The notes: a model not told the origin generated them from the sequence alone. A DNA stretch of 47,925 bases from Cyanophora paradoxa CCMP329 (GCA_004431415.1 QPMI01000105.1:1-47925); one strand, 5' to 3'; shown: positions 5,540 to 47,925, counted from the stretch's first letter. Program-made: numbers and translations.

Positions 5540-8280
5540 CACAAAAACATTCCAGGGGGAACATGCACAAGGCGCTAGCCTTAGGCTGGTGCACCCTGCC
5601 GAGCAGAGCCCCTGTAAGACGCTCTGCCCTTCCAAGTGGGAGCCCCCCCAGTGTTTGGGGACTTGAATGTTTCCTGCGTTCACTCCCTCTTAGCCCTGGT
5701 CAGTTTGAATTCCCATCGGGCCCACAAAACCAAGGTCAGGTGCACACAAAACCTTTCTAGGGGGAACATGCACAAGGCGCTAGCCTAAGGCTGGTGCACC
5801 CTGCCCAGCAGAGGCCCTGTACGAGGCTCTGTTCTTCCATGTGGGATCCCCGCCAAGTATTTGGGAGGGTAGGCAGGTGCACCCTGCCCAGCAGAGGCCT
5901 GGTACGAGGCTCTGCCCTTCCAAGTGGGTTCCCCCCAGTGTTTGGGGATTTGAATGTTTCCTGGGTTCACTCCCTCTTAGCCCTGGTCACTTTGAATTCC
6001 CGTCTGGCCCACAAAAGCAAGGTCAGGTGCACACAAAACCTTTCCAGGGGGAACATGCACAAGGTGCTAGCCTTAGGCAGGTGCACCCTGCCCAGCAGAG
6101 CCCCTGTAAGACGCTCTGCCCTTCCAAGTGGGAGCCCCCCCAGTGTTTGGGGACTTGAATGTTTCTTGGGTTCACTCCCTCTTAGCGCTGGTCAGTTTGA
6201 ATTCCCGTCGGGCCCACAAAAGCAAGGTCAGGTGCTCACAAAAACATTCCAGGGGGAACATGCACAAGGCGCTAGCCTTAGGCAGGTGCACCCTGCCCAG
6301 CAGAGCCCCTGTAAGACGCTCTGCCCTTCCAAGTGGGAGCCCCCCCAGTGTTTGGGGACTTGACTGTTTCCTGGGTTCACTCCCTCTTAGCCCTGGTCGG
6401 TTTGAATTCCCGTTGGGCCCACAAAAGCAAGGTCAGGTGCACACAAAACCTTTCCAGGGGGACCATGCACAAGGCGCTAGCCTTAGGCTGGTGCACCCTG
6501 CCCAGCAGAGCCCCTGTAAGACGCTCTGCCCTTCCAAGTGGGAGCCCCCCCAGTGTTTGGGGACTTGAATGTTTCCTGCGTTCACTCCCTCTTAGCCCTG
6601 GTCAGTTTGAATTCCCATCGGGCCCACAAAACCAAGGTCAGGTGCACACAAAACCTTTCTAGGGGGAACATGCACAAGGCGCTAGCCTAAGGCTGGTGCA
6701 CCCTGCCCAGCAGAGGCCCTGTACGAGGCTCTGTTCTTCCATGTGGGATCCCCGCCAAGTATTTGGGAGGGTAGGCAGGTGCACCCTGCCCAGCAGAGGC
6801 CTGGTACGAGGCTCTGCCCTTCCAAGTGGGTTCCCCCCAGTGTTTGGGGATTTGAATGTTTCCTGGGTTCACTCCCTCTTAGCCCTGGTCACTTTGAATT
6901 CCCGTCTGGCCCACAAAAGCAAGGTCAGGTGCACACAAAACCTTTCCAGGGGGAACATGCACAAGGTGCTAGCCTTAGGCAGGTGCACCCTGCCCAGCAG
7001 AGCCCCTGTAAGACGCTCTGCCCTTCCAAGTGGGAGCCCCCCCAGTGTTTGGGGACTTGAATGTTTCTTGGGTTCACTCCCTCTTAGCGCTGGTCAGTTT
7101 GAATTCCCGTCGGGCCCACAAAAGCAAGGTCAGGTGCTCACAAAAACATTCCAGGGGGAACATGCACAAGGCGCTAGCCTTAGGCTGGTGCACCCTGCCC
7201 AGCAGAGGCCCTGTACGAGGCTCTGCCCTTTCAAGTGGGATCCCTGCCAAGTGTTTGGGGACTTGACTGTTTCCTGGGTTCACTCCCTCTTAGGGCTGGT
7301 CAGTTTGAATTCCCGTTTGGCCCACAAAAGCAAGGTCAGGTGCACACAAAACCTTTCCAGGGGGACCATGCACAAGGCGCTAGCCTTAGGCTGGTGCACC
7401 CTGCCCAGCAGAGGCCCTGTACGAGGCTCTGCCCTTTCAAGTGGGATCCCTGCCAAGTGTTTGGGGACTTGACTGTTTCCTGGGTTCACTCCCTCTTAGG
7501 GCTGGTCAGTTTGAATTCCCGTTTGGCCCACAAAAGCAAGGTCAGGTGCACACAAAACCTTTCCAGGGGGAACATGCACAAGGCACTAGCCCTGTGAGAG
7601 GCTCTGCCCTTCCAAGTGGGATCCCCTCCAGTGTTTGGGGACTTGAATGTTTTCCTGGCTTCACTCCCTCTTAGGGCTGGTCAGTTTGAATTCCCGTCGG
7701 GCCCACAATAGCGAGGTCAGGTGCACACAAAACCTTTCCAGGGGGAACATATACAAGGCGCTAGCCTTAGGCAGGTGTACCCTGCCCATCAGAGGCCCTG
7801 TACAAGGCTCTGCCCTTCCAAGTGGGAGCTCCCCCAGTGTTTGGGGACTTCAATGTTTCCTGGGTTCACTCCCTCTTAGCCCTGGTCATTTTGCATTCCC
7901 GTTGGGCCCACAAAAGCAAGGTCAGGTGCACACAAAACCTTTCTAGGGGGAACATGCACAACGGGGTAGTTTTAGGCAGGTGCACCCTGCCCAGCAGAGC
8001 ACCTGTAGGAGGCTCTGCCCTTCCAAGTGGGATCCCTGCCGAGTGTTTGGGGACTTGAATGTTTCCTGGGTTCACTCCCTCTAAGCCCTGGTCAGTTTGA
8101 ATTCTTGTCGGGCCCACAATAGCGAGGTCAGGTGCACACAAAACCTTTCCTGGGGGAACATGCACAAGGCGCTAGCCTTGTGCATGTTCCCCCTGCCCAG
8201 CAGAGGCCCTTTAAGAGGCTCTGCCCTTCCAAGTGGGACCCCCACCGAGTGTTTGGGGACTTGAATGTTTCCTGGGTTCA
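5540..8280 (+). repeat. S1 satellite array (~205-206 bp monomer, ~13 copies) with a 902-bp higher-order duplication
   Basis: Recurring monomer at 205/206 spacing. Identical ORF starts at 5785/6687, 5794/6696 and 5841/6743. Confidence 0.97.
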
Positions 8281-9797
8281 GCTCCGAACGTAATCATAGA
8301 CATCGCGACGCAAGTTCTTCCAATAGTAACGAGATGAGACAAGATCGATCAACTTGGTCACTCCAGGATGTCCGAAATTGTCATGAAGAGCCCGAAGGAC
8401 CTGTTGAGTCATGGAGTACGGAACAACGACTTGAAAAGAATCAGCTCCAGTTCGTTGGCGACAAAGAACATCGCACTTCAGTACGAATTTCCCACTCTTG
8501 AGTGTTCGCTCCACTGACTTGTCCACGCCCTCAGGCAGGACAAGCACATCATCTTCAAGATACCTGATGATGGTGTTGAGCAACGGATCCTCAAGTTGAG
8601 CAGCTCTAATATCAGAAGCAGAAAGAGATAAGTCAAGCTCAACTGCATTCACAAGAATAGGGATGGGAATGATAGGAGAAATGAGAGACAACTCCTCAAT
8701 CTTGGCAACAACTCGCTTCACAAGTCTTGAAAGTGCATCGGCATCAGCATTCAGGGTACCAGACTTGTGCGAAATTTCATAATTGTACTCCTGCATTCCA
8801 AGAATGCAGCGGGCAATCCGAGCATTTGGGAACTCCTTATTCGACTTCATATACTGGAGAGCACTGTGATCCGACTTGATGAAGAACTTGGGGCCTTTCA
8901 GATAATGTGAGAACTTTTTAGTCACAGCCCAGTAAACAGCATGTAACTCCTGCTCAGTAACTGTCCACTTCTGTTGCTCATCTGATAATGGTTCAGCAGC
9001 ATATGCAATAACAACCTCCTTGTTCCACTTGCACTCAGCTGGGGTGAGTGTCTTAGAAGCAAATGAAATGACTCGCTCCTGACCATTGTCATCCAGCTGC
9101 GACAAGACAGCACCAATGCCAGTTTTCGAAGCATCTGTTTTGAGGATAAAAGGCTTCTTGAAATCTGGAAATGCCAGAAGAGGAGAGGAACATAACAACT
9201 CCTTAAGCTTCCCGAAAGCAAAGTCTTGTGATTCTCCCCATACAAACAAATTCTTGGATTTCAGCAAATCATATAATGGAGAAGCAATGATTGCACATGA
9301 AGGTATGAAGACCCTGTAGTAATTGACAAGACCTAGGAAAGACCTGACTTCTGATACAGATGTTGGAGTCTTGAAATTCTTCACAGCCTGAACTTTGCTG
9401 TCACAAGGCTTGATTCCTTCTCGGCACACAACAAATCCAAGGTACTCAGCTTCAGCCTTGAAGAACCAACACTTGCGTGCTTTTAACCACAGGTGAGCAG
9501 CAATCAGCTGATCAAAAACCCATTCAAGATGTTCGAAATGTTCTGTCAGACTCCTAGAAAAGACACAATATCATCAAGATACACAAGAATAAAGATATAG
9601 AGGTACGCTCCTAACACTCCATTCATCAACATCTGAAATGTCGCAGGGGCTGTTTTGAGGCCCTGCGGCATGACATTCCACTCATACAAACCAGTTGGTG
9701 TCCTAAAAGCTGTCTTCAACCGATCCTTTTCACTCATCTTGACATTCCAATATTTATCATCACAATCTGCAACAGAAATATATATGGATCCAGAAAG
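8281..9797 (-). pseudogene. pol: Gypsy pol fragment, family D (RT-RNase H-start of integrase), frameshifted near 9560
   Basis: MPQGLKTAPATFQ, YLDD, LKTDASKTGIGAVL, NADADALSR, LHDNFGHPG. Truncated by satellite at both ends. Confidence 0.92.
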
Positions 9798-10131: not shown

Positions 10132-10315
10132 GATGCCTGGGGGTGCCCTTCTCGGGATGGCGGTAGGGCTGCAGCTCTGCGGAGCCAAAGCCAAAGGCTA
10201 GCACCCTGTGCATTTTTGTCTGAAAGTTTTTTCCCACCAACAACTTTTCAGGGGGCCAGACAGGGTCCAACCCCCTGTTTTTCAAAAACCGGCGAAAGAC
10301 TGTTTTTCGGTGAAA

Positions 10316-11527
10316 ATGGATTCTTTTGGGTTTTTTTCAAAACAGCCTCATTTTCCGTCGAAGATGCTCGTCGGACGTCCCAACCTGGGATCTTTCGAGC
10401 GCTTCCAGCAGTATCTGCATTCGATTTGGGATTCAAGGATTTTGACGAACCAAGGCCCTCTTCTACAAGAATTCGAAAAGAAGCTCTGTGATTTTTTAAA
10501 TGTGAAGCATTGTATTTGCGTTTGTAATGCCACCGTTGGCCTGGAATTGGCACTAGAAGCCTGCGATGTTAAAGGCGAGGTCATAGTCCCCGCCTATACA
10601 TTTATTGCCAGTGTCCACGCAATCCACGCTCGCAAACTGAACGTGAAGTTTTGTGACGTTGATCCCGTGACACACGTTATAGATGTGGAAAGAGTTCGAG
10701 AATTATTGAATCCAGCAACTTCAGCTGTTCTTGGAGTCCATTTGTGGGGAACAGCGTGCGATGTTGATGGGCTTCAAGAGCTCGCGAGAGAGCATAATCT
10801 GAAATTGATTTTTGATGGTGCGCATGCGTTCGGATGTTCAACGAAAGGTAAACCTCTGGGGAGTTTTGGTGATTGCGAAGTCTTCTCTTTTCACGCAACG
10901 AAATTTTTGAATTCATTTGAAGGTGGTGCCATCACAACAAACTCCGATGAACTAGCCAGAAAACTGAAACTGCTGCGCAATTTTGGATTTGTTGGCACCG
11001 ATCAAGTCATATCTTGGGGAACAAACGCGAAAATGACAGAGATTTGCGCTGCAATGGGTCTTACATCGCTTGACGGTATTCAAGATTTTATAACCATGAA
11101 CAAGAACAATTATCTTCTTTACAAAAAGCACTTGGCTGATGTTCCTGGGATCCGTCTTTATGATTACCCGTTGGACACGCCGCATAATTATCAGTACATT
11201 GTCCTTGAGGTCTCAAAAGAAGAGTTTGGAATCAACAGGGATCAGCTCGTCCAGCTTCTCGAATCTGAAAATGTTTTCGCAAGGCGATACTTCTTCCCCC
11301 CATGTCACCAAATGGAACCTTTTGCAAGCCAAGGATTCGACAAAGTACACTTACCCTCCACTGAAATTCTCAGCCAGAAAACTCTATGTCTCCCTAATGG
11401 CACGTCTGTGACACAAGGAGATGTAGACGAGATATGTTCAATTATTAAGCTTGCACACAAACAATCGCAAAGCCTTGTGTCTGTGATTCCTTCAAAATGT
11501 TTTTACCCGATGAACAAACTTGTTTGA
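10316..11527 (+). CDS. DegT/DnrJ/EryC1/StrS PLP-dependent sugar aminotransferase (DesI/VioA-like NDP-4-keto-6-deoxyhexose aminotransferase)
   Basis: VGRPNLG, EVIVPAYTFIAS, DGAHAFG, FSFHATK (PLP lysine), EGGA, NAKMTEICAAMGLTSL, RRYF. Intact and intronless. ATG 10316 is preferred over GTG 10208, which lies in a decayed satellite core. Confidence 0.93.
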   Translation: MDSFGFFSKQPHFPSKMLVGRPNLGSFERFQQYLHSIWDSRILTNQGPLLQEFEKKLCDFLNVKHCICVCNATVGLELALEACDVKGEVIVPAYTFIASVHAIHARKLNVKFCDVDPVTHVIDVERVRELLNPATSAVLGVHLWGTACDVDGLQELAREHNLKLIFDGAHAFGCSTKGKPLGSFGDCEVFSFHATKFLNSFEGGAITTNSDELARKLKLLRNFGFVGTDQVISWGTNAKMTEICAAMGLTSLDGIQDFITMNKNNYLLYKKHLADVPGIRLYDYPLDTPHNYQYIVLEVSKEEFGINRDQLVQLLESENVFARRYFFPPCHQMEPFASQGFDKVHLPSTEILSQKTLCLPNGTSVTQGDVDEICSIIKLAHKQSQSLVSVIPSKCFYPMNKLV

Positions 11528-11643: not shown

Positions 11644-13336
11644 CGCTAGCCTTAGGCAGGTGCACCCGGCCCACATGAGGGCAGGATGCACCTGCCTTCC
11701 CACTTGGAAGGGCAGAGCCTCGTACAGGGCCTCTGTTGGGCAGGGTGCACCTGCCTAAGGCTAGCGCCTCGTGCACGTTCCCCATGGAAAGTGTTTTTGT
11801 GCACCTGACCTCCTGTTGTGGGCCCGACGGGAATTCAATTCAAACTGACCAGGGCTGAGAAGGAGTGAACCCAGGAAACATTCAAGTTCCCAAACACTTG
11901 GTGGGGGCCCCACTCCGAATGGTCCCACAGGAATGGCTAAGCCTCTTGTGGGGCCACAGCTGGGAAGGGTGTACCTGCCTTGGCTAGCGCCTTGTGCATG
12001 TTCCCCCTGGAAAGGTTTTGTGTGCACCCGACTTCCTGTTGCTAGCCTGAGGAAGATGACCCGCCCACCTGCAAGTCACTCAGTCGAATGCGCCTTGTGC
12101 ATATTCCCCCAGAGAGATTTGGGGTGCATTTTTCTTCTTTTTTCTGGGAGATTGGAAACCTGGGGCCTTCGACTGAGTGACTTGCAGGTGGGTGGGTCAT
12201 CTTCCTAAGGCTAGCGCCTTCTGCATATTCCCCCAGAGAGATTTGGGGTGCATCTTTTTTCGATTTTGTGGCTGATTGGAAACCTGGGGCCTTCGACTGA
12301 GTGACTTGCAGGTGGGAGGGTCATCTTTGTAAGGCTGGCGCCTTCTGCATATTCCCCCAGAGAGATTTGGGGTGCATCTGTTTTCGATTTTGTGGCTGAT
12401 TGGAAACCTGGGGCCTTCGACTGAGTGACTTGCAGGTGGGTGGGTCATCTGCCTAAGGCTAGCGCCTTGTGCATATTCCCCCAGAGAGATTTAGCCGATG
12501 GCTAGCGCCTTGTGCATATTCCCCCAGAGAGATTTGGAGTTCATCTTTCTTCTTTTTTCTGGCAGATTTGAAATCTGGGGCCTTAGACTGAGTGACTCGC
12601 AGGTGGGTGGGTCATCTTCCTAAGGCTAGCGCCTTGTGCACATTCCCCCAGAGAGATTTAAGGTGCATCTTTCTTCTGTTTTGCCACAGATCGGAAACCT
12701 GGGGCCTTCGACTGAGTGGCTTGCTGGTGGGTGGGTTCATCTTCCTAAGGCTAGCGCCTTGTGCATATTCCCCCAGAGAGATTTGGGGTGCATCTTTCTT
12801 CTATTCTCTGGCAGATTGGAAATCTGGGGCCTTCGACTGAGTGACTTGCTTTGAGGTGGGTCATCTGCCTAAGGCTAGCGCCTTCTGCATACCAAGAGAG
12901 ATTTTGGGTGCATTCTTTTTATATTTTGTGGCCTTCGACTGAGTGACTTGCACGTGGGTGGGGCATCTGCCTAAGGCTAGCGGCTTGTGCATATTCACCC
13001 AGGGAGATTTGGGGTGCATCTTTTTTCTATTTGGTCACCTGAGCAGAAACCTGGGGCCTTTGACTGAGTGACTTGCATTTGGGTGGTTCATCTCCTTAAG
13101 GCTAGCGCCTTGTGCATATTCTCCCAGAGAGATTTGAAGTGCATCTTTCTTCTATTTTGTGGCGGATCAGAAACCTGGGGCCTTTGACTGAGTGACTTGC
13201 TGGTGGGTGGGTCATCCTCCTAAGGCTAGCGCCTTGTGCATATTCCCCCAGAGAGATTTGGGGTGCATCTTTCTTCTTTTTCCTGGCAGATTGGAAACCT
13301 GGGGCTTTTGACTGAGTGACTTGCAGGTGGGTGGGT
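11644..13336 (-). repeat. S1 (to ~12040) then S2 satellite, mostly reverse, with short forward patches at 11644 and 12041
   Basis: Monomer matches. Both forward patches begin at the core GCTAGCC. Confidence 0.93.
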
Positions 13337-16061: not shown

Positions 16062-16160
16062 CGGTTATTATTATTTATTTCTTTATTTCGGTTCTCCACT
16101 TCTGTTGCGGGATCGACCTGTAAGCCGCTCATTTCCAGCTTGCGACAGATCGAATTGGAA

Positions 16161-17231
16161 ATGCTTTGGATATGGCAACAAAAACGTACCAAGATTAGAT
16201 TATGCACCATTGCGACCTGTATACTTCTGTATGTTGTATTCCAATTTCTTTATGCGATTCAAAGCAAGCAAGTTGTTGAGCACCTGCAGCAAGATTTCGC
16301 CACGTCGGCGTCCATCGCGTATGCCGATTCTTTCCCTGATGGATTGACGGATCGTCGCCCAGTAATTCTCGGATTCCCTTTCTTGCACGAGCTCGATCTG
16401 CTACACGTCAAGCTCGAAATCCTGCAGCATGTCGTAAGTATCTTCATTGTGTCTGAATCGTGTTACACACAGAGAGGTTTGCCTAAACCTTTGCATTTCT
16501 TCGAAGCCAGGCATGAACCTCGATTTGTGAAGTTCCACAACCGCATTGTTCATGTAAATGATTGCGACCCACCTGGTGCAGTCGATGACGCACTGGGGTG
16601 GAGACATGAACGCAAGGTGAAAAGCAATATTGTCTTAGCGCTTCGAAACCTGTCATTTACGGAAGGGATTGTGATTATTGGTGATGCAGACGAGATTCCC
16701 TCCCCAGAAGCCGTACTTTGGCTCCAGAAACACCTCAATTACTCCGATACTTTTGAGTTCGCGACAACTATGCATCATTTTGTTTATGGATTCATGTGGA
16801 TAGCAAGAGACCACCACTATTCCACTATGACAGCAAGAACGTTGCAGCAAGAATTGAGATTCTGGGCTTCGAAATTTCATAACCGACCGTTTTCCCAAAA
16901 TGTACGACCGCTTGGAATGCATCCTAGTGGTTGGCATTGCTCGTATTGCATTGAGGAAAATCTGATTTTAGAGAAAATACAGTCTGCAAACACTGTTGAT
17001 GGCCCTCTTATCTTAAGTTCTTTAGATTGGACTCTACTCGATATTCAGGAATTCAAGTCTTGCGGAAAAACTTTACAGGGAATGATACTTACGCCTACAA
17101 AGATTCAGCTGAACTCCTCCTCCCTGTCTTTGTACCCCTATCTTACATCTTTGCCCTCGCCAATTTCAATTGACTGCCAGAATTTGCGACTACCAAAAAA
17201 GATGGCGAAGAAGCCCAAGCAGTACTCGTAA
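16161..17231 (+). CDS. Glycosyltransferase family 17 (MGAT3/GnT-III-like), type II membrane protein
   Basis: Short basic tail plus TM helix, ELDLLHVKLEIL..VVSIFIVSES..T.RG.PKPL, IIGDADEIP (DxD), GWHCSYC. Intact and intronless; first ATG at 16161. Confidence 0.88.
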   Translation: MLWIWQQKRTKIRLCTIATCILLYVVFQFLYAIQSKQVVEHLQQDFATSASIAYADSFPDGLTDRRPVILGFPFLHELDLLHVKLEILQHVVSIFIVSESCYTQRGLPKPLHFFEARHEPRFVKFHNRIVHVNDCDPPGAVDDALGWRHERKVKSNIVLALRNLSFTEGIVIIGDADEIPSPEAVLWLQKHLNYSDTFEFATTMHHFVYGFMWIARDHHYSTMTARTLQQELRFWASKFHNRPFSQNVRPLGMHPSGWHCSYCIEENLILEKIQSANTVDGPLILSSLDWTLLDIQEFKSCGKTLQGMILTPTKIQLNSSSLSLYPYLTSLPSPISIDCQNLRLPKKMAKKPKQYS

Positions 17232-20230: not shown

Positions 20231-20923
20231 AAATCCCTCTGGGCGAATATGCACATGGCGCCTTAGGCAGATGAACCCACCCACCAGAAAGTCACTGGGT
20301 CGAAGGCCCCTGGATAAGGATCTGTGACAAAATAGAAGCAAGATGCACCCCAAATCTCTCAGGGGGAATATCCACAGGGGGCTAGCCTTAGGCAGATGAT
20401 CCCACCCACCAGCAAGTCACTGAGTCGAAGGCCCCAGGTTTCCGATAAGCCAGTGCTTTTGTTTGCATGACTTCGAACTGCAAACAATGCAGGAGAAATG
20501 AACTTGTCCCAGTCATTGCGATCCTCATTGACATAGTTGTAGATGATATCTTTAAAGGATTGATTAAAACGCTCAACCTTTCCAGTAGCCATGGGCCGAT
20601 AACCAGTGTTGAGAACGGACTTGGTTCCAAGCTTGCGACATAAGTGTTTGATGACATGGCTTGCAAATGCACCGCCTCAATCTGTGTAAATCATTCGAGG
20701 CACTCCATGACGGCAGACAATGTCTTCATACAGTAGATTTGCTGCTGCTTTGGCTGACATAGTCGGATAGGCCTGGAACCTTCAACACACATTTATGCAG
20801 AAGACAAATATGAAATATTTAATATTGAGATCTCCTTATCAAATGATGTAAAGCAGATTTATAATGAGGCCATCTGCGTAAGGATAGCGCCTTGTGCATG
20901 TTCCCCCAGAGAGATTTGGGGTG
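20231..20923. other. Patchwork: S2(+) 20231-20445, family C integrase piece (-) 20446-20772, family C piece (+) 20774-20868, S2(-) to 20923
   Basis: Pieces match ~27115-27440 (reverse) and ~26532-26626 (forward). Confidence 0.85.
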
Positions 20924-23438: not shown

Positions 23439-25734
23439 CCCAGGTTTCTGATCTGTGACAAAATAGAAGAGAGATGCACCCCCAATCTCCCTGGGGGAAT
23501 ATACACAAGGCGCTAGCCTTAGGCAGATGAACCCACCCACCAGCAAGTCACTCAGTCAAAGGCCCCAGGTTTCTGATCCACCACAAAATAGGAGAAAGAT
23601 GCACCCAAAATCTCTCTGGGGGAACATGCACAAGGCGCTAACCTTAGGAAGATGACCCACCCACCAGCAAGTCACTCAGACAGAGGGCCCAGGTTTCTGA
23701 TCCATGACAAAATAGAAGAAAGATGCACCCCAAATCTCTCTGGGGGAATATCCACAAGGCGCTAGACTTATGCAGATGGCCTACCCACCAGCAAATCACT
23801 CAGTCCAAGGCCCCAGGATTCTGATCTGTGACAAAATAGAAGAGAGATGCATCCCCAATCTCCCTGGGGGAATATGCACAAGGCGCTAGCCTTAGGAAGA
23901 TAAACCCACCCACCAGCAAGCCACTCAGTCAAAGGCCCCAGGTTTCCAATCCGCCACAAAATACAAGGATGCACCCCAAATCTCTCTGGGGGAACATGCA
24001 CAAGGTGTTAGCCTAAGGAAGATGACCCACCCACCAGCAAGTCACTCAGTCAGAGGCCCCAGGTTTCTGATCTGTGACAAAAAATAAGAAAGATGCACCA
24101 AAAATCTCTCTGGGGGTATGTGCGCAGGGCGCTAGCCTTGGAAAGATGACCCACCCACCAGCAAGCCACTCAGTCAAAGGCCCCAGGTTTCCAATCCCAC
24201 AAAATGGAAGAAAGATGCACCCCAAATCTCTCTGGGGGAATGTGTACAAGGCACCAGCAAGTCGCCAGAACATACAAGAAAGATGCACCCCAAATCTCTC
24301 TGGGGGAACATGCATAAGGCGCTAGCCTTACACAGATGGCCTACCCACCGGTTAATCACTCAGTCGAAGGCCCCAGGTTTCCGATCTGTGACAAAATAGA
24401 AGAAAGACACACCCTCAATCTCCCTGGCGGAATATGCACAAGGCGCTAGCTTTAGGCAGATGAACCCACCCACCAGCAAGTCACTCAGTGAAAAGGTTCA
24501 GGTTTCTGATCCGCCACAAAATAGATGAAAGACTCACCCCCCATCTCCCTGGGGAATATGCACAAGGCGCTAGCCTTAGGAAGATGAACCCACCCAAAAG
24601 CAAGCCACTCAGTCAAAGGCCCCAGGTTTCCAATTCACCACAAAATTGAAGACAAATGCACCTCAAATCTCTCTGGGGGAATATGTAGAAGGCACCAGCA
24701 AGTCGCCAGAAAATTCAAGAAAGATGCACCCCAAATCTCTCTGGGGGAACATGCACAAGGCGCTATCCTTACGCAGATGGCCTACCCACTGGTTAATCAC
24801 TCAGTCGAAGGCCCCAGGTTCAGGATCTGTGACAAAATAGAAGAGAGATGCATCCCCAATCTCCCTGGGGGAATATGCACAAGGCGCTAGCCTTAGGAAG
24901 ATGAACCCACCCACCAGCAAGCCACTCAGTCAAAGGCCCCAGGTTTCCAATCCGCCACAAAATAGAAGGATGCACCCCAAATCTCTCTGGGGGAACATGC
25001 ACAAGGTGTTAGCCTAAGGAAGATGACCCACCCACCAGCAAGTCACTCAGTCAGAGGCCCCAGGTTTCTGATCTGTGACAAAAAATAAGAAAGATGCACC
25101 AAAAATCTCTCTGGCGGTATGCCCCAGGTTTCCAATTCACCACAAAATTGAAGACAAATGCACCCCAAATCTCTCTGGGGGAATGTGTAGAAGGCACCAG
25201 CAAGTCGCCAGAAAATACAATAAAGATGCACCCCAAATCTCTCTGGGGGAACATGCACAAGGCGCTAGCCTTAGGCAGATGGCCTACCCACTGGTTAATC
25301 ACTCAGTCGAAGGCCCCAGGTTTCTGATCTGTGAAAAAATAGAAGAGAGATGCACCCCCAATCTCCCTGGGGGAATATGCACAAGGCGCTAGCCTTAGGA
25401 AGATGAACCCACCCACCAGCAAGCCACTCAGTCAAAGGCCCCAGGTTTCCAATCCGCCACAAAATAGAAGGATGCACCCCAAATCTCTCTGGGGGAACAT
25501 GCACAAGGTGTTAGCCTAAGGAAGATGACCCACCCACCAGCAAGTCACTCAGTCAGAGGCCCCAGGTTTCTGATCTGTGACAAAAAATAAGAAAGATGCA
25601 CCAAAAATCTCTCTGGCGGTATGCCCCAGGTTTCCAATTCACCACAAAATTGAAGACAAATGCACCCCAAATCTCTCTGGGGGAATGTGTAGAAGGCACC
25701 AGCAAGTCGCCAGAAAATACAAGAAAGATGCACC
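23439..25734 (+). repeat. S2 satellite array with 502-bp higher-order repeat
   Basis: ~124-bp monomers and deletion variants. Same ORFs at 25075/25577. Confidence 0.96.
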
Positions 25735-33553: not shown

Positions 33554-33686
33554 TGATAGGGTAGCAGGGGAATCAGAGGCTTAGAGGGGGCAGGGCGGAA
33601 GCTGTTCGGGTGTGTTGTGGGGATCTGGTGTGTTTGGAGTGTGTGTGGTTGTGTTGATATATGCGTCTTGTGCTGTTAGCGTGTTA
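33554..33686 (+). repeat. LTR C (duplicate 3' LTR)
   Basis: Same as 27836-27968. Confidence 0.92.
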
Positions 33687-34248
33687 TGGGGCCTTCGACT
33701 GAGTGATTAACCAGTGGGTAGGCCATCTGCGTAAGGATAGCACCTTGTGCATGTTCCCCCAGAGAGATTTGGGGTGCATCTTTCTTGTATTTTCTGGCGA
33801 CTTGCTTGTGCCTTCTACACATTCCCCCAGAGAGATTTGGGGTGCATTTGTCTTCAATTTTGTGGTGAATTGGAAACCTGGGGCCTTTGACTGAGTGACT
33901 TGCTGGTGGGTGGGTCATCTTCCCAAGGCTAGCGCCTTGCGCACATACCCCCAGAGAGATTTTTGGTGCATCTTTCGTATTTTTTGTCACAGATCAGAAA
34001 CCTGGGGCCTTTGACTGAGTGACTTGCTGGTGGGTGGGTCATCTCCCTTAGGCTAACACCTTGTGCATGTTCCCCCAGAGAGATTTGGGGTGCATCTTTC
34101 TTCTATTATGTGGCGGATCGGAAACCTGGGGCCTTCAACTGAGTGACTTGCTGGTGGGTGGGTCATCTTCCTAAGGCTAGCGCCTTGTGCATATTCCCCC
34201 AAGGAGATTGAGGGTGCGTCTTTGTTCTATTTGTTTTTGGAAACCTGA
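33687..34248 (-). repeat. S2 satellite
   Basis: Reverse monomers. Confidence 0.94.
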
Positions 34249-34249: not shown

Positions 34250-35044
34250 CGCTAGCCTTAGGCTGGTGCACCCTGCCCAGCAGAGTGGGAGCCCCCCCAG
34301 TGTTTGGGGACTTGAATGTTTCCCTGGTTCACTCCCTGTAAGCGCTGGTCAGTTTGAATTCCCGTCGGGCCCACAAAAGCAAGGTCAGGTGCACACAAAA
34401 ACTTTCCAGGGGGAACATGCACAAGGCGCTAGCCTAAGGCAGGTGCACCCTGCCCAGAAGAGGCCCTCTAAGAGGCTCTGTCCTTCCAAGTGGGACCTCC
34501 ACCGAGTGTTTGGGGGCTTGAATGTTTCCTGGGTTCACTCCCTCTTAGCGCTGGTCAGTTTGAATTCCCGTTGGGCCCACAACAGGAAGGTCAGGTGCAC
34601 ACAAAACCTTTCCAGGGGGAGCATGCACAAGGCGCTAGCCTTAGGCTGGTGCACCCTCCCCAGCAAAGGCCCTCTAAGAGGCTCTGCCAATCCAAGTGGG
34701 ACCCCCACCAAGTGTTTGGGGACTTGAATGTTTCCTGGGTTCAATCCCTGTTAGCGCTGGTCAGTTTGAATTCCCGTCGGGCCCACAAAAGCGAGGTCAG
34801 GTGCACACAAAAACTTTCCAGGGGGAACATGCACAAGGCGCTGCCTTAGGCAGGTGCACCCTGTCCAGCAGAGGCCCTGTACGAGGCTCTGCCCTTCCAA
34901 GTGGGATCCCCCCGATTGTTTGGGGACTTGAATGTTTCCTGGGTTCACTCCTTCTTAGCGCTGGTCAGTTTGAATTCCCGTCGGGCCCACAAAAGCAAGG
35001 TCAGGTGGACACAAAAACATTCCAGGGGGAACATGCACAGGGCG
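34250..35044 (+). repeat. S1 satellite
   Basis: About 4 monomers, beginning and ending at the core hairpin. Confidence 0.95.
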
Positions 35045-35081: not shown

Positions 35082-36257
35082 TCACTGCGGATGTACTTTT
35101 TGCTCGGAGATAGAGTCAACTAAAGTTATCGTGTTCAGATTTTCCTGTGCGATTTCTTCTTGCAAGTCCGTCGTGTCTAAGAAATTGCGAATGTTAATAC
35201 CGTCAACTGGTCCCTGGTACTTCTTCTGTATATCTTCGAGGTCAGCTTTTACCATAATTTCAGCTAGATCATCGAGAGAAGTTGCTGATTTCCAACCGAG
35301 CAATGTATTCGCCTTCTGGCAATCCCCCAGCAAAAATTCAACCTCAGCAGGTCTGAAAAAATCCGGTGAAACTTTTACTACCTCCTTCCCAGTGCTTATG
35401 TCAATTCCAACTTCGTCAATACCACTTCCTTTCCAAAGTATATCAATACCAGCATGCTTGAATGCCAGTGCTGCAAAATCCCTCACAGATGCAGATCTTC
35501 CAGTTGCAAGCACGAAATCATCGGCCTCTTTGTGTTGGAGAATCATCCACATGCCATGAACGTAATCTTTAGTGTAGCCCCAGTCACGTTTAGCATTCAA
35601 ATTTCCGAGAGTTATGTGCTCTTGAAGGCCCAGTTTGATTCTCGCCACAGCCCTCGAGATTTTTCTGGTAACAAAGTGAGTGCCTCGCCGAGGACTTTCA
35701 TGATTGAAAAGAATGCCGTTGGAGGCGAACATGCCGTATGCCTCCCGGTAATTAACGACAGTCCAGTATGCAAATACTTTCGCGCATCCGTAAGGGGATC
35801 GAGGATGAAAAGGTGTTGTTTCGGATTGTGGAACTTCGCGCACTTTACCATACATTTCTGATGTTGAGGCTTGGTAGAATTTCACACCGGGCCTGCGCTG
35901 TCTTATCACTTCCAAGATGTTTTGTACTGCGGTGCCGTTTGCAGCAGTTGTATATTGAGGATTGTCAAACGAGACTTTCACGTCACTCATTGCCGCAAGA
36001 TTGTAGAACTCATCGGGCATACAAAGAGTAATGATTCTCTCGATGCTGGTTACGTCGAGGAGATCACCGTAATGAAGATGTAAACGACGGCCGAGGAGAA
36101 CCGGGGTCAGAAGATGTTTGATACGCGAACCGTGCATGTCACTCGAATGCCTGACAATTCCGTGTACAATGTAGTCCTTCTCAAGCAGTAGCTCAGCCAA
36201 ATAGCTTCCATCTTGCCCAGTGATACCTGTGATGACTGCAACTTTCCGATGGGCCAT
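35082..36257 (-). CDS. gmd: GDP-mannose 4,6-dehydratase
   Basis: ITGITGQDGSYLAELLL, YQASTSEMYG, PRSPYGCAK (YxxxK), NGILFNHESPRRG, LGNLNAKRDWG, RPAEV. Intact, intronless, with a ~45-aa C-terminal extension. Confidence 0.97.
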   Translation of the reverse strand: MAHRKVAVITGITGQDGSYLAELLLEKDYIVHGIVRHSSDMHGSRIKHLLTPVLLGRRLHLHYGDLLDVTSIERIITLCMPDEFYNLAAMSDVKVSFDNPQYTTAANGTAVQNILEVIRQRRPGVKFYQASTSEMYGKVREVPQSETTPFHPRSPYGCAKVFAYWTVVNYREAYGMFASNGILFNHESPRRGTHFVTRKISRAVARIKLGLQEHITLGNLNAKRDWGYTKDYVHGMWMILQHKEADDFVLATGRSASVRDFAALAFKHAGIDILWKGSGIDEVGIDISTGKEVVKVSPDFFRPAEVEFLLGDCQKANTLLGWKSATSLDDLAEIMVKADLEDIQKKYQGPVDGINIRNFLDTTDLQEEIAQENLNTITLVDSISEQKVHPQ

Positions 36258-38096: not shown

Positions 38097-39402
38097 CTCT
38101 TGGCCTTGTCCAGGAAACAATTGTCCATGTTAACTCATCCTCGAAGTAGGTGACAAGGAGAGCCTGTCCTTGTCAACGCTACTACTCCATTCAAATGGTC
38201 TTCACTCCTCCAATCACTAGTGTGTAGTGATTAACCCGCTCCATCCAACTCCAGACTCCAAGGACACTTTTAACAGATGAACCACTGTCCAGCAAATCTT
38301 GGAATCCTCTGGTCTCCTGCAAATGCTGGGAGTGCACCAAAGAGGAAGATGTGCTGGGAGCTTGGCTGACTCGTGAGTAGCGCACTGTGCATCATTGCAT
38401 GTCCAGAGTCCAGCAATTATAGATGAAGGTAGGCAACTTCTTGTACATGTCCAACAGTGGTGACCCTTCTGCACCAAGAATACAGTCCTGCGATTCCAGC
38501 TTTGGCAATCCAGGAAAAACAAATCATCGAATGTGACATCCTGGGAAAACAAATCTCCGACATGCACCAAGAAATAAGAGAAGCTTTGAGCTGCAAGTAG
38601 TACACAGAGGAAACACTGTGCTGCAAGACAATTCTTAGGCCTTTTCAAGTGTACATCTACGTTCGGAAGCAGAAAGACTACGAGCACCTAGAAGACATCT
38701 AGCAGGAACCACTGCGAAGGGAAAAGTGCCAATGCACTACCTGCGAATGCAGGCCACAGCAGTGTGCATACGTCTCGAAGTACTCGTTGTCAATCCTTCC
38801 CGTGTGAAACGCGACAGCCCTTTCGAGAATATTCCCAGTTTCGCGAAATGCGAATGCACTTCCCCAGCGACTGGTATGAAGAACAACGTGCGAATGCACG
38901 GACCATCCCTGTCAAAACAGAGACATGGGCTTGTCGAGCCAGCACGAGAACCACGGCTTCAATAATGAAAACGTGATATAGCGGAATGTAATCCATGCGA
39001 AACCAGAGCGTCGCTCGCTCTGTGGTAGAAAAAAAGAAGACGATGGCCGACAACGGAAAGTGAAGCGTACGACATACGAGTATGGGAAAGCATTCCAATG
39101 AGCCTAGCACGGAAAAAAATAGGTAGCTGTATTTTGTGCACACCTGTTCGAAGGAATAAAAAAAAAACAGCATGTGCACGGGAATCGTTCCGCGGCGGCC
39201 CCCAATTGAGATGAAGCAGCTGGATGAATGTGGCTGCGATAAGCTGCTGCATCCCAAGGTGTGCTAGACTACATTAGAGATGCATTCATTTATTCATGGG
39301 ACAACCCAAGACTAACCCTCACACCAAGACACTGCAAGGGGAAAGGGGGAGAACTAGGTACACTAAAGAGGGAACAGGGGAGAGTCACTACGCTTCACAA
39401 CA
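38097..39402 (-). mobile_element. Element B, partial copy (5' LTR start at 39402 plus internal region)
   Basis: Starts TGTTGTGAAGCGTAGT, like LTR A; duplicate of 43553-44857. Confidence 0.7.
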
Positions 39403-39804
39403 ATTCAACAAGATTTTCATCTTTACATAATCTTCTTCGTCAACTGTATTCTTTGGAGAAGTCGTGGAATCTGATGGCTCGATATTCTAGTGCATGCAAG
39501 ATTACGTCTGATTGCTTGTATGAAGAACCAATCAGCCTGAAGCAACTAAACATTCATGAAAACGATCTTTTTATCCCCCCATTCACACCAGACGATCAGT
39601 ATAATGACCGTCTTGCAATAGGAAGCAGTTATTCAACATTTTTAGCTGCTAACAGAAGGTTTTCCACACTTGCTTTTTGCTCTGCGCAAACTCCTGCAAG
39701 ACCATTGCATTCCGAAATTCTTTTGTATAACAACCTGCAGCACCACAATGTGACTGTTCGTAGATCCCATTTAAGGTTCTGCAGGGTGAGATCAACAGGA
39801 ATTG
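39403..39804 (+). pseudogene. C-terminal half of the split glycosyltransferase-like gene (copy 1)
   Basis: STRFSSLHNLLRQLYSL...IPPF..YNDRLAIG...PLHSE...RFCRVR. Starts at ATTC right after the LTR B terminus. Confidence 0.7.
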
Positions 39805-39857
39805 GCGTAGCACCACAATGTGACTGTTCGTAGATCCCATTTAAGGTTCTGCAGGGT

Positions 39858-40986
39858 GTCATCTCCCTAAGGCGCTAGCCTTAGGGAGATGACCCACCCA
39901 CCAGCAAGTCACCCAGTCAGAGGCCGCAGGTTTCCGATCTGCCACAAAATAGAAGAAGGATGCACTTCAAATCTCTCTGGGGGAATATGCACAAGGCGCT
40001 AGCCTTAGGCAGATGACCCACACAAAACCTTTCCAGGGGGAACATGCACAAGGCGCTAGCCTTAGGCTGGTGCACCCTGCCCAGCAGAGGCCCTGTACGA
40101 GGCTCTGTTCTTCCATGTGGGATCCCTGCCTAGTGTTTGGGGACTTGAATGTTTCCTGGGTTCACTCCCTCTTAGCGCTGGTCAGTTTGAATTCCCGTCG
40201 GGCCCACAAAAGCAAGGTCAGGTGCTCACAAAAACATTCCAGGGGCAGATGACCCTCCCAAAAGCAAGACACTCAGTCAAAGGCCCCAGGTTTCCGATCT
40301 GCCACAAAATAGAAGAAGGATGCACTTCAAATCTCTCTGGGGAATATGCACAAGGCGCTAGCCTTAGGCAGATGACCCTCCCAAAAGCAAGACACTCAGT
40401 CAAAGGCCCCAGGTTTCCGATCTGCCACAAAATAGAAGAAGGATGCACTTCAAATCTCTCTGGGGGAATATGCAAAAGGCGCTAGCCTTAGGCAGATGAC
40501 CCTCCCAAAAGCAAGTCACTCAGTCAGAGGCCCCAGGTTTCAGAAAGATGCACCCCAAATCTCTCTGGGGGAATATGCAAAAGGCGCTAGCCTTAGGCAG
40601 AGGACCCACCCACCAGCAAGTCACTCAGTCCAACTCCGCAGGTATCCGATCTGCCACAAAATAGAAGAAACATGCACCCCAAATCTCTCTGGGGGAATAT
40701 GCACAAGGCGCTAGCCGTAGGCAGATGACCCACCCACCAGCAAGTCACTCAGTCGACGGCCCCAGGTTTCCGATCTGCCAAAAAGAGAAGAAAGATGCAC
40801 CCCAAATCTCTCTGGGGGAACATGCACAAGGCGCTAGCCTTAGGCAGATGACCCACCCACCAGCAAGTCACTCAGTCATAGGCCCCTGGTTTCTCATCTG
40901 CCAGAAAATAGAAGAAAGATGCACCCCAAATCTCTCTGGGGGAATATGCACAAGGCGCTAGCCTTGGGCAGATGACCCACCTACCA
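39858..40986 (+). repeat. Mixed S2/S1/S2 satellite
   Basis: One S1 monomer (40021-40245) embedded in S2. Confidence 0.95.
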
Positions 40987-43183: not shown

Positions 43184-44857
43184 CAAGACTAACCCTCACA
43201 CCAAGACACTGCAAGGGGAAAGGGGGAGAACTAGGTACACTAAGAGGGAACAGGGGAGAGTCACTACACTTCACAACAATCGCTCTGTGGTAGAAATGCC
43301 CACGTCCTCGCTGGCCCAATGATAATAGAAGAACAGCTACAATGCTCTAAGATGCGAATGCATCGATACTCTGCACATCTTCACTCGCACTGACCATGTG
43401 GACTTCAGATGAGAGGACATCACTCAGCAATGAGAAGAAGCACAACCAAAGCTGGCCTGTTGTCAAAACAACCTTTGACCATACAATCAACTCCAGAGCG
43501 AGAAAACAGCATGCCCATCATGCGACAGAGCCTGTAACATCAATCTTGGCAACTCTTGGCCTTGTCCAGGAAACAATTGTCCATGTTAACTCATCCTCGA
43601 AGTAGGTGACAAGGAGAGCCTGTCCTTGTCAACGCTACTACTCCATTCAAATGGTCTTCACTCCTCCAATCACTAGTGTGTAGTGATTAACCCGCTCCAT
43701 CCAACTCCAGACTCCAAGGACACTTTTAACAGATGAACCACTGTCCAGCAAATCTTGGAATCCTCTGGTCTCCTGCAAATGCTGGGAGTGCACCAAAGAG
43801 GAAGATGTGCTGGGAGCTTGGCTGACTCGTGAGTAGCGCACTGTGCATCATTGCATGTCCAGAGTCCAGCAATTATAGATGAAGGTAGGCAACTTCTTGT
43901 ACATGTCCAACAGTGGTGACCCTTCTGCACCAAGAATACAGTCTGCGATTCCAGCTTTGGCAATCCAGGAAAAACAAATCATCGAATGTGACATCCTGGG
44001 AAAACAAATCTCCGACATGCACCAAGAAATAAGAGAAGCTTTGAGCTGCAAGTAGTACACAGAGGAAACACTGTGCTGCAAGACAATTCTTAGGCCTTTT
44101 CAAGTGTACATCTACGTTCGGAAGCAGAAAGACTACGAGCACCTAGAAGACATCTAGCAGGAACCACTGCGAAGGGAAAAGTGCCAATGCACTACCTGCG
44201 AATGCAGGCCACAGCAGTGTGCATACGTCTCGAAGTACTCGTTGTCAATCCTTCCCGTGTGAAACGCGACAGCCCTTTCGAGAATATTCCCAGTTTCGCG
44301 AAATGCGAATGCACTTCCCCAGCGACTGGTATGAAGAACAACGTGCGAATGCACGGACCATCCCTGTCAAAACAGAGACATGGGCTTGTCGAGCCAGCAC
44401 GAGAACCACGGCTTCAATAATGAAAACGTGATATAGCGGAATGTAATCCATGCGAAACCAGAGCGTCGCTCGCTCTGTGGTAGAAAAAAAGAAGACGATG
44501 GCCGACAACGGAAAGTGAAGCGTACGACATACGAGTATGGGAAAGCATTCCAATGAGCCTAGCACGGAAAAAAATAGGTAGCTGTATTTTGTGCACACCT
44601 GTTCGAAGGAATAAAAAAAAAACAGCATGTGCACGGGAATCGTTCCGCGGCGGCCCCCAATTGAGATGAAGCAGCTGGATGAATGTGGCTGCGATAAGCT
44701 GCTGCATCCCAAGGTGTGCTAGACTACATTAGAGATGCATTCATTTATTCATGGGACAACCCAAGACTAACCCTCACACCAAGACACTGCAAGGGGAAAG
44801 GGGGAGAACTAGGTACACTAAAGAGGGAACAGGGGAGAGTCACTACGCTTCACAACA
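43184..44857 (-). mobile_element. Element B: non-autonomous LTR element (5' LTR from 44857, decayed internal region, truncated 3' LTR from 43278)
   Basis: Two same-orientation LTR starts 1579 bp apart. The 3' UTR motif GGCCAGCGnGGACGTGG is shared with A. Relic knuckle and LLDSG motifs inside. Confidence 0.72.
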
Positions 44858-45260
44858 ATTCAACAAGATTTTCATCTTTACATAATCTTCTTCGTCAACT
44901 GTATTCTTTGGAGAAGTCGTGGAATCTGATGGCTCGATATTCTAGTGCATGCAAGATTACGTCTGATTGCTTGTATGAAGAACCAATCAGCCTGAAGCAA
45001 CTAAACATTCATGAAAACGATCTTTTTATCCCCCCATTCACACCAGACGATCAGTATAATGACCGTCTTGCAATAGGAAGCAGTTATTCAACATTTTTAG
45101 CTGCTAACAGAAGGTTTTCCACACTTGCTTTTTGCTCTGCGCAAACTCCTGCAAGACCATTGCATTCCGAAATTCTTTTGTATAACAACCTGCAGCACCA
45201 CAATGTGACTGTTCGTAGATCCCATTTAAGATTCTGCAGGGTGAGATCAACAGGAATTGT
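44858..45260 (+). pseudogene. C-terminal half of the split gene (copy 2)
   Basis: Duplicate of 39403-39804, ending in S2 satellite. Confidence 0.7.
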
Positions 45261-47925
45261 AAATCTCTCTGGGGGAATATGCACAAGGCGCTAGCCTTAG
45301 GGAGATGACCCACCCACCAGCAAGTCACCCAGTCAGAGGCCGCAGGTTTCCGATCTGCCACAAAATAGAAGAAGGATGCACCCCAAATCTCTCTGGGGGA
45401 ATATGCACAAGGCGCTAGCCTTAGGCAGATGACCCACACAAAACCTTTCCAGGGGGAACATGCACAAGGCGCTAGCCTTAGGCTGGTGCACCCTGCCCAG
45501 CAGAGGCCCTGTACGAGGCTCTGTTCTTCCATGTGGGATCCCTGCCGAGTGTTTGGGGACTTGAATGTTTCCTGGGTTCACTCCCTCTTAGCGCTGGTCA
45601 GTTTGAATTCCCGTCGGGCCCACAAAAGCAAGGTCAGGTGCTCACAAAAACATTCCAGGGGCAGATGACCCTCCCAAAAGCAAGACACTCAGTCAAAGGC
45701 CCCAGGTTTCCGATCTGCCACAAAATAGAAGAAGGATGCACTTCAAATCTCTCTGGGGGAATATGCACAAGGCGCTAGCCTTAGGCAGATGACCCTCCCA
45801 AAAGCAAGACACTCAGTCAAAGGCCCCAGGTTTCCGATCTGCCACAAAATAGAAGAAGGATGCACTTCAAATCTCTCTGGGGGAATATGCAAAAGGCGCT
45901 AGCCTTAGGCAGATGACCCTCCCAAAAGCAAGTCACTCAGTCAGAGGCCCCAGGTTTCAGAAAGATGCACCCCAAATCTCTCTGGGGGAATATGCACAAG
46001 GCGCTAGCCTTAGGCAGATGACCCACCCACCAGCAAGTCACTCAGTCGAACGCCCCAGGTTTCCGATCTGCCACAAAATAGAAGAAACATGCACCCCAAA
46101 TCTCTCTGGGGGAATATGCACAAGGCGCTAGCCTTAGGCAGATGACCCACCCACCAGCAAGTCACTCAGTCGAAGGCCCCAGGTTTCCGATCTGCCAAAA
46201 AGAGAAGAAAGATGCACCCCAAATCTCTCTGGGGGAATATGCACAAGGCGCTAGCCTTAGGCAGATGACCCACCCACCAGCAAGTCACTCAGTCATAGGC
46301 CCCTGGTTTCTCATCTGCCAGAAAATAGAAGAAAGATGCACCCCAAATCTCTCTGGGGGAATATGCACAAGGCGCTAGCCTTGGGCAGATGACCCTCCCA
46401 AAAGCAAGACACTCAGTCAAAGGCCCCAGGTTTCCGATCTGCCACAAAATAGAAGAAGGATGCACTTCAAATCTCTCTGGGGGAATATGCACAAGGCGCT
46501 AGCCTTAGGCAGATGACCCTCCCAAAAGCAAGACACTCAGTCAAAGGCCCCAGGTTTCCGATCTGCCACAAAATAGAAGAAGGATGCACTTCAAATCTCT
46601 CTGGGGGAATATGCAAAATGCGCTAGCCTTAGGCAGATGACCCTCCCAAAAGCAAGTCACTCAGTCAGAGGCCCCAGGTTTCAGAAAGATGCACCCCAAA
46701 TCTCTCTGGGGGAATATGCACAAGGCGCTAGTCTTAGGCAGATGACCCACCCACCAGAAAGTCACTCAGTCGAAGGCCCCAGGTTTCCGATCCGCAACAA
46801 AATAGAAGAAAGATGTACCCCAAATCCCTCTGGGGGAATATGCACAAGGCGCTAGCCTTAGGCAGAGGACCCACCCACCAGCAAGTCACTCAGTCCAACT
46901 CCGCAGGTTTCCGATCTGCCACAAAATAGAAGAAACATGCACCCCAAATCTCTCTGGGGGAATATGCACAAGGCGCTAGCCGTAGGCAGATGACCCACCC
47001 ACCAGCAAGTCACTCAGTCGACGGCCCCAGGTTTCCGATCTGCCAAAAAGAGAAGAAAGATGCACCCCAAATCTCTCTGGGGGAACATGCACAAGGCGCT
47101 AGCCTTAGGCAGATGACCCACCCACCAGCAAGTCACTCAGTCATAGGCCCCTGGTTTCCAATCTGCCAGAAAATAGAAGAAAGATGCACCCCAAATCTCT
47201 CTGGGGGAATATGCAAAAGGCGCTAGCCTTGGGCAGATGACCCTCCCAAAAGCACGACACTCAGTCAAAGGCCCCAGGTTTCCGATCTGCCACAAAATAG
47301 AAGAAGGATGCACTTCAAATCTCTCTGGGGGAATATGCACAAGGCGCTAGCCTTAGGCAGATGACCCTCCCAAAAGCAAGACACTCAGTCAAAGGCCCCA
47401 GGTTTCCGATCTGCCACAAAATAGAAGAAGGATGCACTTCAAATCTCTCTGGGGAATATGCAAAAGGCGCTAGCCTTAGGCAGATGACCCTCCCAAAAGC
47501 AAGTCACTCAGTCAGAGGCCCCAGGTTTCAGAAAGATGCACCCCAAATCTCTCTGGGGGAATATGCACAAGGCGCTAGTCTTAGGCAGATGACCCACCCA
47601 CCAGAAAGTCACTCAGTCGAAGGCCCCAGGTTTCCGATCCGCAACAAAATAGAAGAAAGATGTACCCCAAATCCCTCTGGGGGAATATGCACAAGGCGCT
47701 AGCCTTAGGCAGAGGACCCACCCACCAGCAAGTCACTCAGTCCAACTCCGCAGGTTTCCGATCTGCCACAAAATAGAAGAAACATGCACCCCAAATCTCT
47801 CTGGGGGAATATGCACAAGGCGCTAGCCGTAGGCAGATGACCCACCCACCAGCAAGTCACTCAGTCGAAGGCCCCAGGTTTCCGATCTGCCAAAAAAGAG
47901 AAGAAAGATGCACCCCAAATCTCTC
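45261..47925 (+). repeat. S2 satellite array (one S1 monomer at ~45437-45661) with 724/848-bp higher-order periods
   Basis: 124-bp spacing with a recurrent ~105-bp variant. ORF offsets 45913/46637 and 46142/46990. Confidence 0.97.

Follow-up and report, generated by a model that had tools for sequence, protein, structure and literature searches.

What makes a single four-nucleotide loop recur at the broken and inverted ends of a satellite? The question is raised by a window of 47 925 nt from the glaucophyte alga Cyanophora paradoxa CCMP329 (GCA_004431415.1, QPMI01000105.1:1-47925; 'the window' below means this whole stretch), in which two tandem satellites, S1 and S2, share a short hairpin-forming core. 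A preliminary description had seen this core as a recurrent break and fold-back point and, beyond that, as a nick, recombination or replication-origin site that turns the satellite into an active platform for capturing genes. Our analysis suggests instead that the core is probably a quasi-palindromic hotspot of template switching, where stalling of replication or repair would have given rise to fold-backs, inverted tracts and deletions. All results come from the ~48 kb of assembled sequence of this window and from a hand-curated list of junctions.

The window (~48% G+C) is a mosaic of three components: the two satellites, truncated pieces of Ty3/gypsy elements and three intronless open reading frames (ORFs) of sugar pathways. 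Tandem arrays were delimited with TRF and segmentation. For junction phasing, the window was compared with consensus monomers of S1 and S2 by a jumping Viterbi alignment, and each break was inspected by eye. Recent segmental duplications must be discounted in event counts; recent duplicates and higher-order-repeat copies were collapsed before counting, which left approximately 71 junction sides. Coordinates are collected in table 1.

A quasi-palindromic core common to both satellites

The S1 unit is 205/206 nt and the S2 unit 124 nt; the two are homologous across approximately 90 nt, and S1 carries approximately 115 nt extra. The core, AAGGCGCTAGCCTT (AAGGC-GCTA-GCCTT, a 14-mer), is present in the window in 92 copies with at most one mismatch, against 0.01 expected. 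It centres the only near-identical stretch of S1 and S2 (approx. 38 nt, one mismatch), so that the description of it as the best-conserved part shared by the satellites holds between the families. Within each family it does not: conservation of the 14-mer is approximately 95%, but it ranks only 68th of 205 positions in S1 and 9th of 124 in S2.

The 14-mer lies at the centre of a quasi-palindrome of approximately 42 nt, in which 10–14 of the 19 arm positions are paired in 98 of 100 copies. As single-stranded DNA (ssDNA), the core is predicted to fold with −14.2 kcal/mol in S1 (z −3.3) and −10.0 kcal/mol in S2 (z −2.1). The monomers therefore hold, before any rearrangement, an imperfect inverted repeat able to form an ssDNA hairpin, as expected of a quasi-palindrome hotspot. 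No compensatory stem changes were seen among the core copies. C-to-T and G-to-A substitutions at the CpG of the core (phases 3 and 4; for example in the copies at 6061, 6963, 14727, 28015 and 7580) are its most frequent variants, which fits the expectation from decay of methyl-cytosine. The 21-nt core had zero exact matches in JGI metagenome contigs, and a single 18-mer match in IMG/VR was put down to chance, its flanks being unrelated.

Two perfect fold-backs centred on the loop

Two core copies have become perfect hairpins around GCTA, at 8152-8193 with 19-bp arms and at 39858-39893 with 16-bp arms, both precisely as the preliminary description had reported them. They are the sole perfect hairpins in the window with arms of at least 14 nt (0.001 expected by chance) and the only outliers in arm pairing among the 100 core copies, none of which is intermediate between normal and perfected arms.

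Fold-back 1 (core copy 8166) aligns to other S1 monomers without gaps and differs by five substitutions clustered within 14 nt, each of which turns the right arm into the complement of the canonical left arm. The 14 nt to the right of the stem are, in other words, the reverse complement of the canonical left arm, put in place with no change of length, and after this patch the S1 monomer resumes in register. A fold of −26.2 kcal/mol is predicted for this DNA, where a normal S1 core has −14.2 kcal/mol.

In fold-back 2 (copy 39869), it is the left arm that has been overwritten, by a mirror of the right arm, the latter being identical to that of a paralogue in the tandem duplicate (table 1). This paralogue has the normal S2 left arm within flanks that are 99.9% identical; fold-back 2 therefore postdates the duplication and the normal state is ancestral. 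Immediately upstream there is also a direct duplication of 50–55 nt of unique flank (39739-39793 and 39809-39863). Fold-back 2 reads as a recent and complex event, of the sort produced by multi-step template switching or by snap-back end joining, and snap-back synthesis during end joining does fit such a complex event.

At both copies, the changes are clustered, all raise complementarity and are templated by the other arm, which we read as the signature of template-switch mutation. The donor arms are opposite (left to right in fold-back 1, right to left in fold-back 2), and there is thus no polarity. Ordinary template switching in replication or repair at a quasi-palindrome accounts for the fold-backs with no need of a special enzyme.

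Several ORFs lie near fold-back 2. An ORF of 190 amino acids with a weak match to DUF7796 (E 4e-5, below the Pfam cut-off) is found at 39261-39833 (+) and 44716-45294 (+); its end coincides with the satellite border at which fold-back 2 formed. Two more, both unassigned (38217-38687 and 38790-39257), occupy the opposite strand of the duplicated unit that holds the fold-back.

Blocks, inverted tracts and deletions that meet the loop

The loop also marks the ends of satellite blocks. Blocks start in it at 11644, 12041 and 34250, and one ends in it at 35044, all of which agrees with the preliminary description; an S2(−) segment has its start there too (12089/12090). The sequences joined to the loop differ from one another, so these are separate events. 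Two of the starts, 11644 and 12041, mark the distal limits of short tracts that repeat neighbouring sequence in inverted orientation. In the tract at 11644-11766, both arms have their outer ends in the loop and the left arm adjoins the 3′ flank of a DegT-type gene; nested within this tract is a zero-spacer fold-back centred at approximately 11675/11676, off the loop. The tract at 12041-12215 has its left end in the loop, and so has the S2(−) array on its right (12090).

Deletions that begin at the loop or remove the hairpin are flanked by 3-nt repeats. The one at 7588/7589 lies between two GCC triplets, and the S1-to-S2 joint at 40243/4, which removes the hairpin and has a duplicate at 45659/45660, between short AGG repeats. 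The deletion at 24251/24252 has been amplified in a higher-order repeat (24692/3, 25194/5 and 25696/7, plus the 29158-31453 duplicate), and a copy in reverse orientation lies near 33799-33810. The loop micro-deletions that had been placed near 20260 and 34840 were located at 20260/20261, where four bases are missing, and at 34842/34843, where one is.

The S1 block at 34250-35044 both starts and ends in the loop; to its left is S2(−) broken at phase 57 and to its right the 3′ end of a GDP-mannose dehydratase gene. A block that starts and ends at the same phase might be taken for an RNA-level unit, as in ribozyme satellites or retrozymes, with the loop as self-cleavage site and blocks derived from cut RNA. 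We regard this as scarcely credible, since the fold-backs and inverted tracts are signatures of DNA synthesis. A search of the whole window against Rfam gave no family at the gathering score, and representative S1 and S2 stretches gave none at E values up to 1; with no self-cleaving motif found in this way, the ribozyme candidate was rejected.

Could the unusual joints have been made during sequencing or assembly, by chimeric reads or polishing errors in repeats? The window does contain near-identical tandem duplicates that could be misjoined haplotypes: 22376-28041 recurs as 28094-33759 (5.7 kb, 99.9% identical) and 38097-40978 as 43553-46395 (2.9 kb, 99.9%/98.8% identical), each with satellite and gypsy fragments inside. 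These duplications are either very recent or haplotypes joined in assembly. The 1-nt loop deletion at 34842/3 likewise resembles an error. Known fold-back read artefacts, however, are palindromes of kilobase length, quite unlike a 14-nt mirrored patch that rejoins the normal monomer in register; one and the same biological quasi-palindrome is the centre of both fold-backs; and several variants have been amplified in higher-order repeats, which marks them as old and real. An artefactual origin is therefore very improbable.

Orientation flips and the overall distribution of breaks

Direct orientation flips between satellite segments are clustered at the loop. Five of six have a side in it (8170, 39868, 12041, 12090 and 34250; P approx. 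4e-5, a generous estimate), and in the sixth, a complex case at 11644-11697, the end of the inverted arm lies in the loop. Counting both ends of the 12041-12088 tract as a single event gives 4/5 (approx. 4e-4, by hand). This signal is much sharper than the enrichment of breaks overall: loop phases 2–7 hold seven of the 71 junction sides (7588, 11644, 12041, 12090, 24251, 34250 and 35044), against 2.8 expected (P approx. 0.02, in-sample). The flips and both fold-backs support the core as a probable structure-driven hotspot, at which rearrangement is non-random, most of all where segments are joined in inverted (fold-back) orientation. The overall excess of junctions at the loop in this window is modest, and the strongest break sites lie elsewhere.

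Several points weigh against template switching at the core as the general explanation. Only 5 bp of the stem are perfectly paired, beyond which the hairpin is imperfect. The loop enrichment, at approximately 2.5-fold, vanishes when the interval is broadened to the whole hairpin, and the test is in-sample, post hoc and based on a curated list from one window of 48 kb. Hotter break sites exist, at S1 phases 29–36 (8 of 32 sides) and S2 phases 51–58 (9 of 39 sides). At 11644, 34250 and 35044, the joints show neither microhomology nor templated sequence by which template switching could be told with certainty from plain breakage and joining. Finally, the fold-backs are known from assembled sequence alone, where assembly error is possible.

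Some of the same figures suit a more modest account, in which the hairpin caused only the two fold-backs and the loop-ended blocks arose by chance among the many junctions of a heavily rearranged stretch, their number being partly inflated by the inheritance of old junctions and by post hoc choice of the site. Such an account would expect the in-sample P of approx. 0.02 and the loss of the excess over the whole hairpin, and it is helped by the GCCC and CCCAG motifs, which are equally or more enriched, and by non-independence: 12041 and 12090 bound a single tract, and the 68-nt variant has been amplified. It is nevertheless unlikely, given that nearly all orientation flips are at the loop, that the partners of the loop joints differ, which indicates separate events, and that two inverted tracts end exactly in the loop.

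The stronger hotspots of both families sit on a GCCC(C)AG motif (scan P approx. 0.001 for S1 and approx. 0.04 for S2). Examples are the breaks at 9799, 11673, 15787 and 36639 in S1 phases 29–36, where another hairpin, of 6 bp (phases 14–30), has its 3′ foot, and those at 14394, 23439, 25121, 27969 and 34247 in S2 phases 51–58. They may reflect retrotransposon target preference or microhomology. A single AGGC/GCCT microhomology rule for all hotspots was considered and dropped, its support being an exploratory enrichment (z approx. 3, with 1-nt padding) and its predictions failing at the joints 12089 and 34249. A 133-nt segment occurs twice in opposite orientations with 99.2% identity (23307-23438 and 27836-27968); taken together, the copies border on S2 phase 58 at one end and on phase 55 at the other, and the pair looks as though S2 had received a single small insert, with duplication of a 4-nt target, that was later split by inversion or duplication.

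A proposed sequence of events

Template switching would begin when the core becomes single-stranded, during replication or the repair of a break, and folds into a hairpin. Synthesis would stall or be released there, and the free 3′ end could prime on the wrong template. Were this its own nascent strand, a perfect fold-back would result; priming on the other strand, at a distance of some tens of bases, would leave inverted tracts that end in the loop. Slippage over the hairpin would give deletions that start at it or remove it. A stalled hairpin might also be broken and opened by general hairpin-processing nucleases and then end-joined, leaving the loop attached to unrelated DNA. We infer that the process is replication or repair synthesis and that the enzymes acting in it are general rather than dedicated. 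No new mechanism is established; the core is a clear natural instance of DNA fragility of a known type.

The window is an unusually clean natural record of how a short quasi-palindrome shapes satellite evolution, with two independent, perfectly preserved template-switch events, of which one can be dated from a paralogue that was not rearranged, and with inverted tracts and deletions anchored at one 4-nt loop. It supports the idea that conserved satellite boxes can act through DNA structure as sites of rearrangement, and extends that picture to a glaucophyte alga. It also counsels caution: such sites should not be read as enzyme targets without genome-wide junction maps.

Gene islands and the case for and against a dedicated enzyme

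Three intact genes for sugar-nucleotide or glycan enzymes each stand alone in an island of 1.3–1.7 kb with satellite on both sides, in DNA of approximately 48% G+C. The ORF for a DegT-type aminotransferase, described as DesI/perosamine-synthase-like, occupies an island of 1.4 kb between satellite blocks, the right border of which is at the loop (11644). The GDP-mannose 4,6-dehydratase island (1.3 kb) has one border at the loop (35044) and the other 22 nt before the stem (36379), while the GT17-like island has neither border there (16061 and 17737). A degenerate core upstream of the DegT-type ORF (10188-10211) was rejected as a further loop border: it is part of a longer, decayed S1(−) piece, which puts the island border off the loop. 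Exact-protein look-ups of the dehydratase and DegT-type ORFs matched no record. The dehydratase and the aminotransferase could together constitute a pathway to a GDP-4-amino-6-deoxy sugar.

In an enzymatic explanation, an HUH/Helitron Rep, a tyrosine recombinase or a specialized hairpin nuclease would recognize the hairpin and nick or recombine it, and the core would serve as origin or attachment site for the movement of blocks and the capture of genes. Two of the three single-gene islands touch the loop, the S1 block 34250-35044 starts and ends in it and the loop breaks are confined to a narrow zone, phases 2–7. Within that zone, however, the position varies over 3–5 nt rather than falling on one phosphodiester bond; other break sites are hotter; and of the six island borders only 11644 and 35044 are in the loop, the remaining four lying outside it. 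A nonamer-like nick motif would not fit into a loop of 4 nt, the hairpin is followed neither by a CTRR end conserved in both satellites nor by a cluster of junctions, and the opposite donor arms of the fold-backs argue against polarity. Pfam was run on the 20 ORFs of at least 150 amino acids in this window: none has a Rep, helicase or tyrosine recombinase domain, and a RepHel gene was likewise not found, the only matches being sugar enzymes and the protease, reverse transcriptase, RNase H and integrase domains of the truncated Ty3/gypsy pieces. We consider a dedicated enzyme improbable, and the earlier suggestion of a nick site, rolling-circle origin or recombinase site finds no footing in these ORFs, in the short loop, in the spread of the breaks or in their lack of polarity. 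The cargo-capturing platform fares little better with so few island borders in the loop. A narrower version would place a cut in the loop, near the GCGC on its 5′ side, made by a dedicated nuclease (specific for structure or for sequence) or an HUH-type enzyme whose gene lies elsewhere in the genome; such cutting would move whole-monomer blocks and help to lodge single intronless sugar-pathway genes in the arrays. This we hold to be quite improbable; if true, a eukaryotic satellite would here play the part of a cassette-capture site.

The arrays themselves were also considered as the fixed interior of one transposon, and this was rejected, as their non-satellite flanks are unrelated apart from recent duplicates. 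A further recent duplication, likewise discounted in the counts, lies at the start of the main S1 array, where 5540-6687 resembles 6442-7591 with 97% identity.

Table 1. Positions of the fold-backs, loop breaks, satellite arrays and sugar-pathway ORFs in the window.
Feature	Position	Strand	Details
Fold-back 1	8152..8193	+	Arms 8152-8170/8175-8193, 19 nt, 100% complementary; 4-nt loop GCTA
Fold-back 2	39858..39893	+	Arms 39858-39873/39878-39893, 16 nt, 100% complementary; 4-nt loop
Fold-back 2 paralogue, unrearranged	45261..45309	+	Normal S2 left arm; in 99.9%/98.8% duplicate 38097-40978 vs 43553-46395
S1(+) block start	11644	+	Phase 3, in loop
S2(+) block start	12041	+	Phase 4, in loop
S2(−) start	12089/12090	−	Phase 5, in loop
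S1(+) block start	34250	+	Phase 3, in loop
S1(+) block end	35044	+	Phase 4, in loop
S1 block, both ends in loop	34250..35044	+	Starts phase 3, ends phase 4
Inverted tract	11644..11766	.	Arms 11644-11680/11730-11766, 37 nt, 89% complementary; 49-nt spacer
Inverted tract	12041..12215	.	12041-12088 (S2 phases 4-51) is the reverse complement of 12168-12215, 46/48 by eye
Deletion, 175-nt variant	7580..7597	+	~31 nt, S1 phases 8-38 lost at 7588/7589; starts at 3′ loop edge
Deletion, part of 68-nt variant	24240..24263	+	26 nt, S2 phases 3-28 lost at 24251/24252; starts at 5′ stem/loop border
Hairpin-removing S1-to-S2 joint	40236..40252	+	S1 phase 191 joined to S2 phase 14 at 40243/4
Loop micro-deletion	20250..20270	+	All four loop bases gone between 20260/20261; stem arms abut
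Loop micro-deletion	34835..34847	+	One base gone between 34842/34843; possibly sequencing error
Main S1 array	5540..8285	+	205/206-nt unit; 83-, 175- and 287-nt variants; contains fold-back 1 and the 7588/7589 deletion (TRF, segmentation)
Diverged S2 array	23439..25734	+	441-nt higher-order repeat; within 5.7-kb tandem duplication
Largest S2 array	45660..47925	+	124-nt unit, 105-nt variant, 248/476-nt higher-order periods; continues past window end
DegT/DesI-type sugar aminotransferase ORF, intronless	10208..11527	+	Pfam PF01041 E 4e-101; PDB 2po3 E 4e-104
GT17-like glycosyltransferase ORF, intronless	16140..17231	+	Pfam PF04724 E 5e-21
GDP-mannose 4,6-dehydratase ORF, intronless	35082..36257	−	Pfam PF16363 E 1e-134; PDB matches E 1e-122

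Comparison with known systems

A Helitron terminus has a 3′ hairpin, a CTRR end within approximately 10–12 nt of it and a 5′ TC, with insertion between A and T. The origins recognized by HUH Rep proteins of CRESS viruses, geminiviruses and rolling-circle plasmids carry the nick motif in a loop of approximately 9–13 nt and have one fixed nick, polarity and a Rep gene nearby. The core resembles these elements in that a hairpin is associated with DNA ends, but differs in the absence, in this window, of CTRR and TC termini, a nonamer loop, a nearby Rep and polarity, and in its variable break position. A Helitron terminus was rejected because the breaks fall inside the loop rather than downstream, no CTRR is conserved between S1 and S2 and the flanks have no A|T pattern; an HUH Rep origin was rejected on the 4-nt loop, breaks that span phases 2–7, the opposite donor arms and the lack of a Rep in the window. 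In an integron-like platform, each cassette is bounded by an attC hairpin site and an integrase (a tyrosine recombinase) is present; with two of six island borders in the loop and no recombinase domain in the window ORFs of at least 150 amino acids, this candidate was rejected as well.

The closest match is quasi-palindrome template-switch mutation, established with reporters in Escherichia coli and yeast (PMC7202029), together with the short-range template switches by which inverted copies have formed in the genomes of apes and humans (PMC7954356, PMC9435742). In both settings, an imperfect inverted repeat is perfected in one step by changes templated from the other arm; copy 8166 corresponds to the form with no length change, while copy 39869 would be a complex, multi-switch variant accompanied by a nearby templated duplication. 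The difference is that a conserved box is present approximately 100 times in 48 kb of satellite-rich DNA, so that one class of site has been hit repeatedly.

Among satellites, a study of the mollusc satellite phBglII400 places 13 of 16 junction breakpoints inside a 12-bp palindrome (PMC5139131) and cites palindromes at repeat junctions of the Nasonia PSR chromosome (Reed et al. 1994, cited in PMC5139131). The likeness is that the points at which satellite gives way abruptly to other DNA are concentrated in a short palindrome of the repeat unit. The excess in C. paradoxa, at seven of 71 sides, is weaker than that of phBglII400, and other sites are hotter; its fold-backs and flip bias are direct mechanistic signatures, of which the abstract and searched passages of PMC5139131 make no mention. 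In Meloidogyne, conserved boxes common to diverged satellites are obligatory parts of monomer junctions (PMC3694981), and there, as here, diverged families keep one short motif that is involved in rearrangement joints. That motif, however, is CENP-B-box-like and has been linked to the idea of transposase-type cut-and-paste (PMC3694981), whereas the C. paradoxa core is a hairpin with template-switch signatures. Satellite joints in a palindrome or conserved box are thus already known; what is unusual here is the clarity of the mechanistic footprints.

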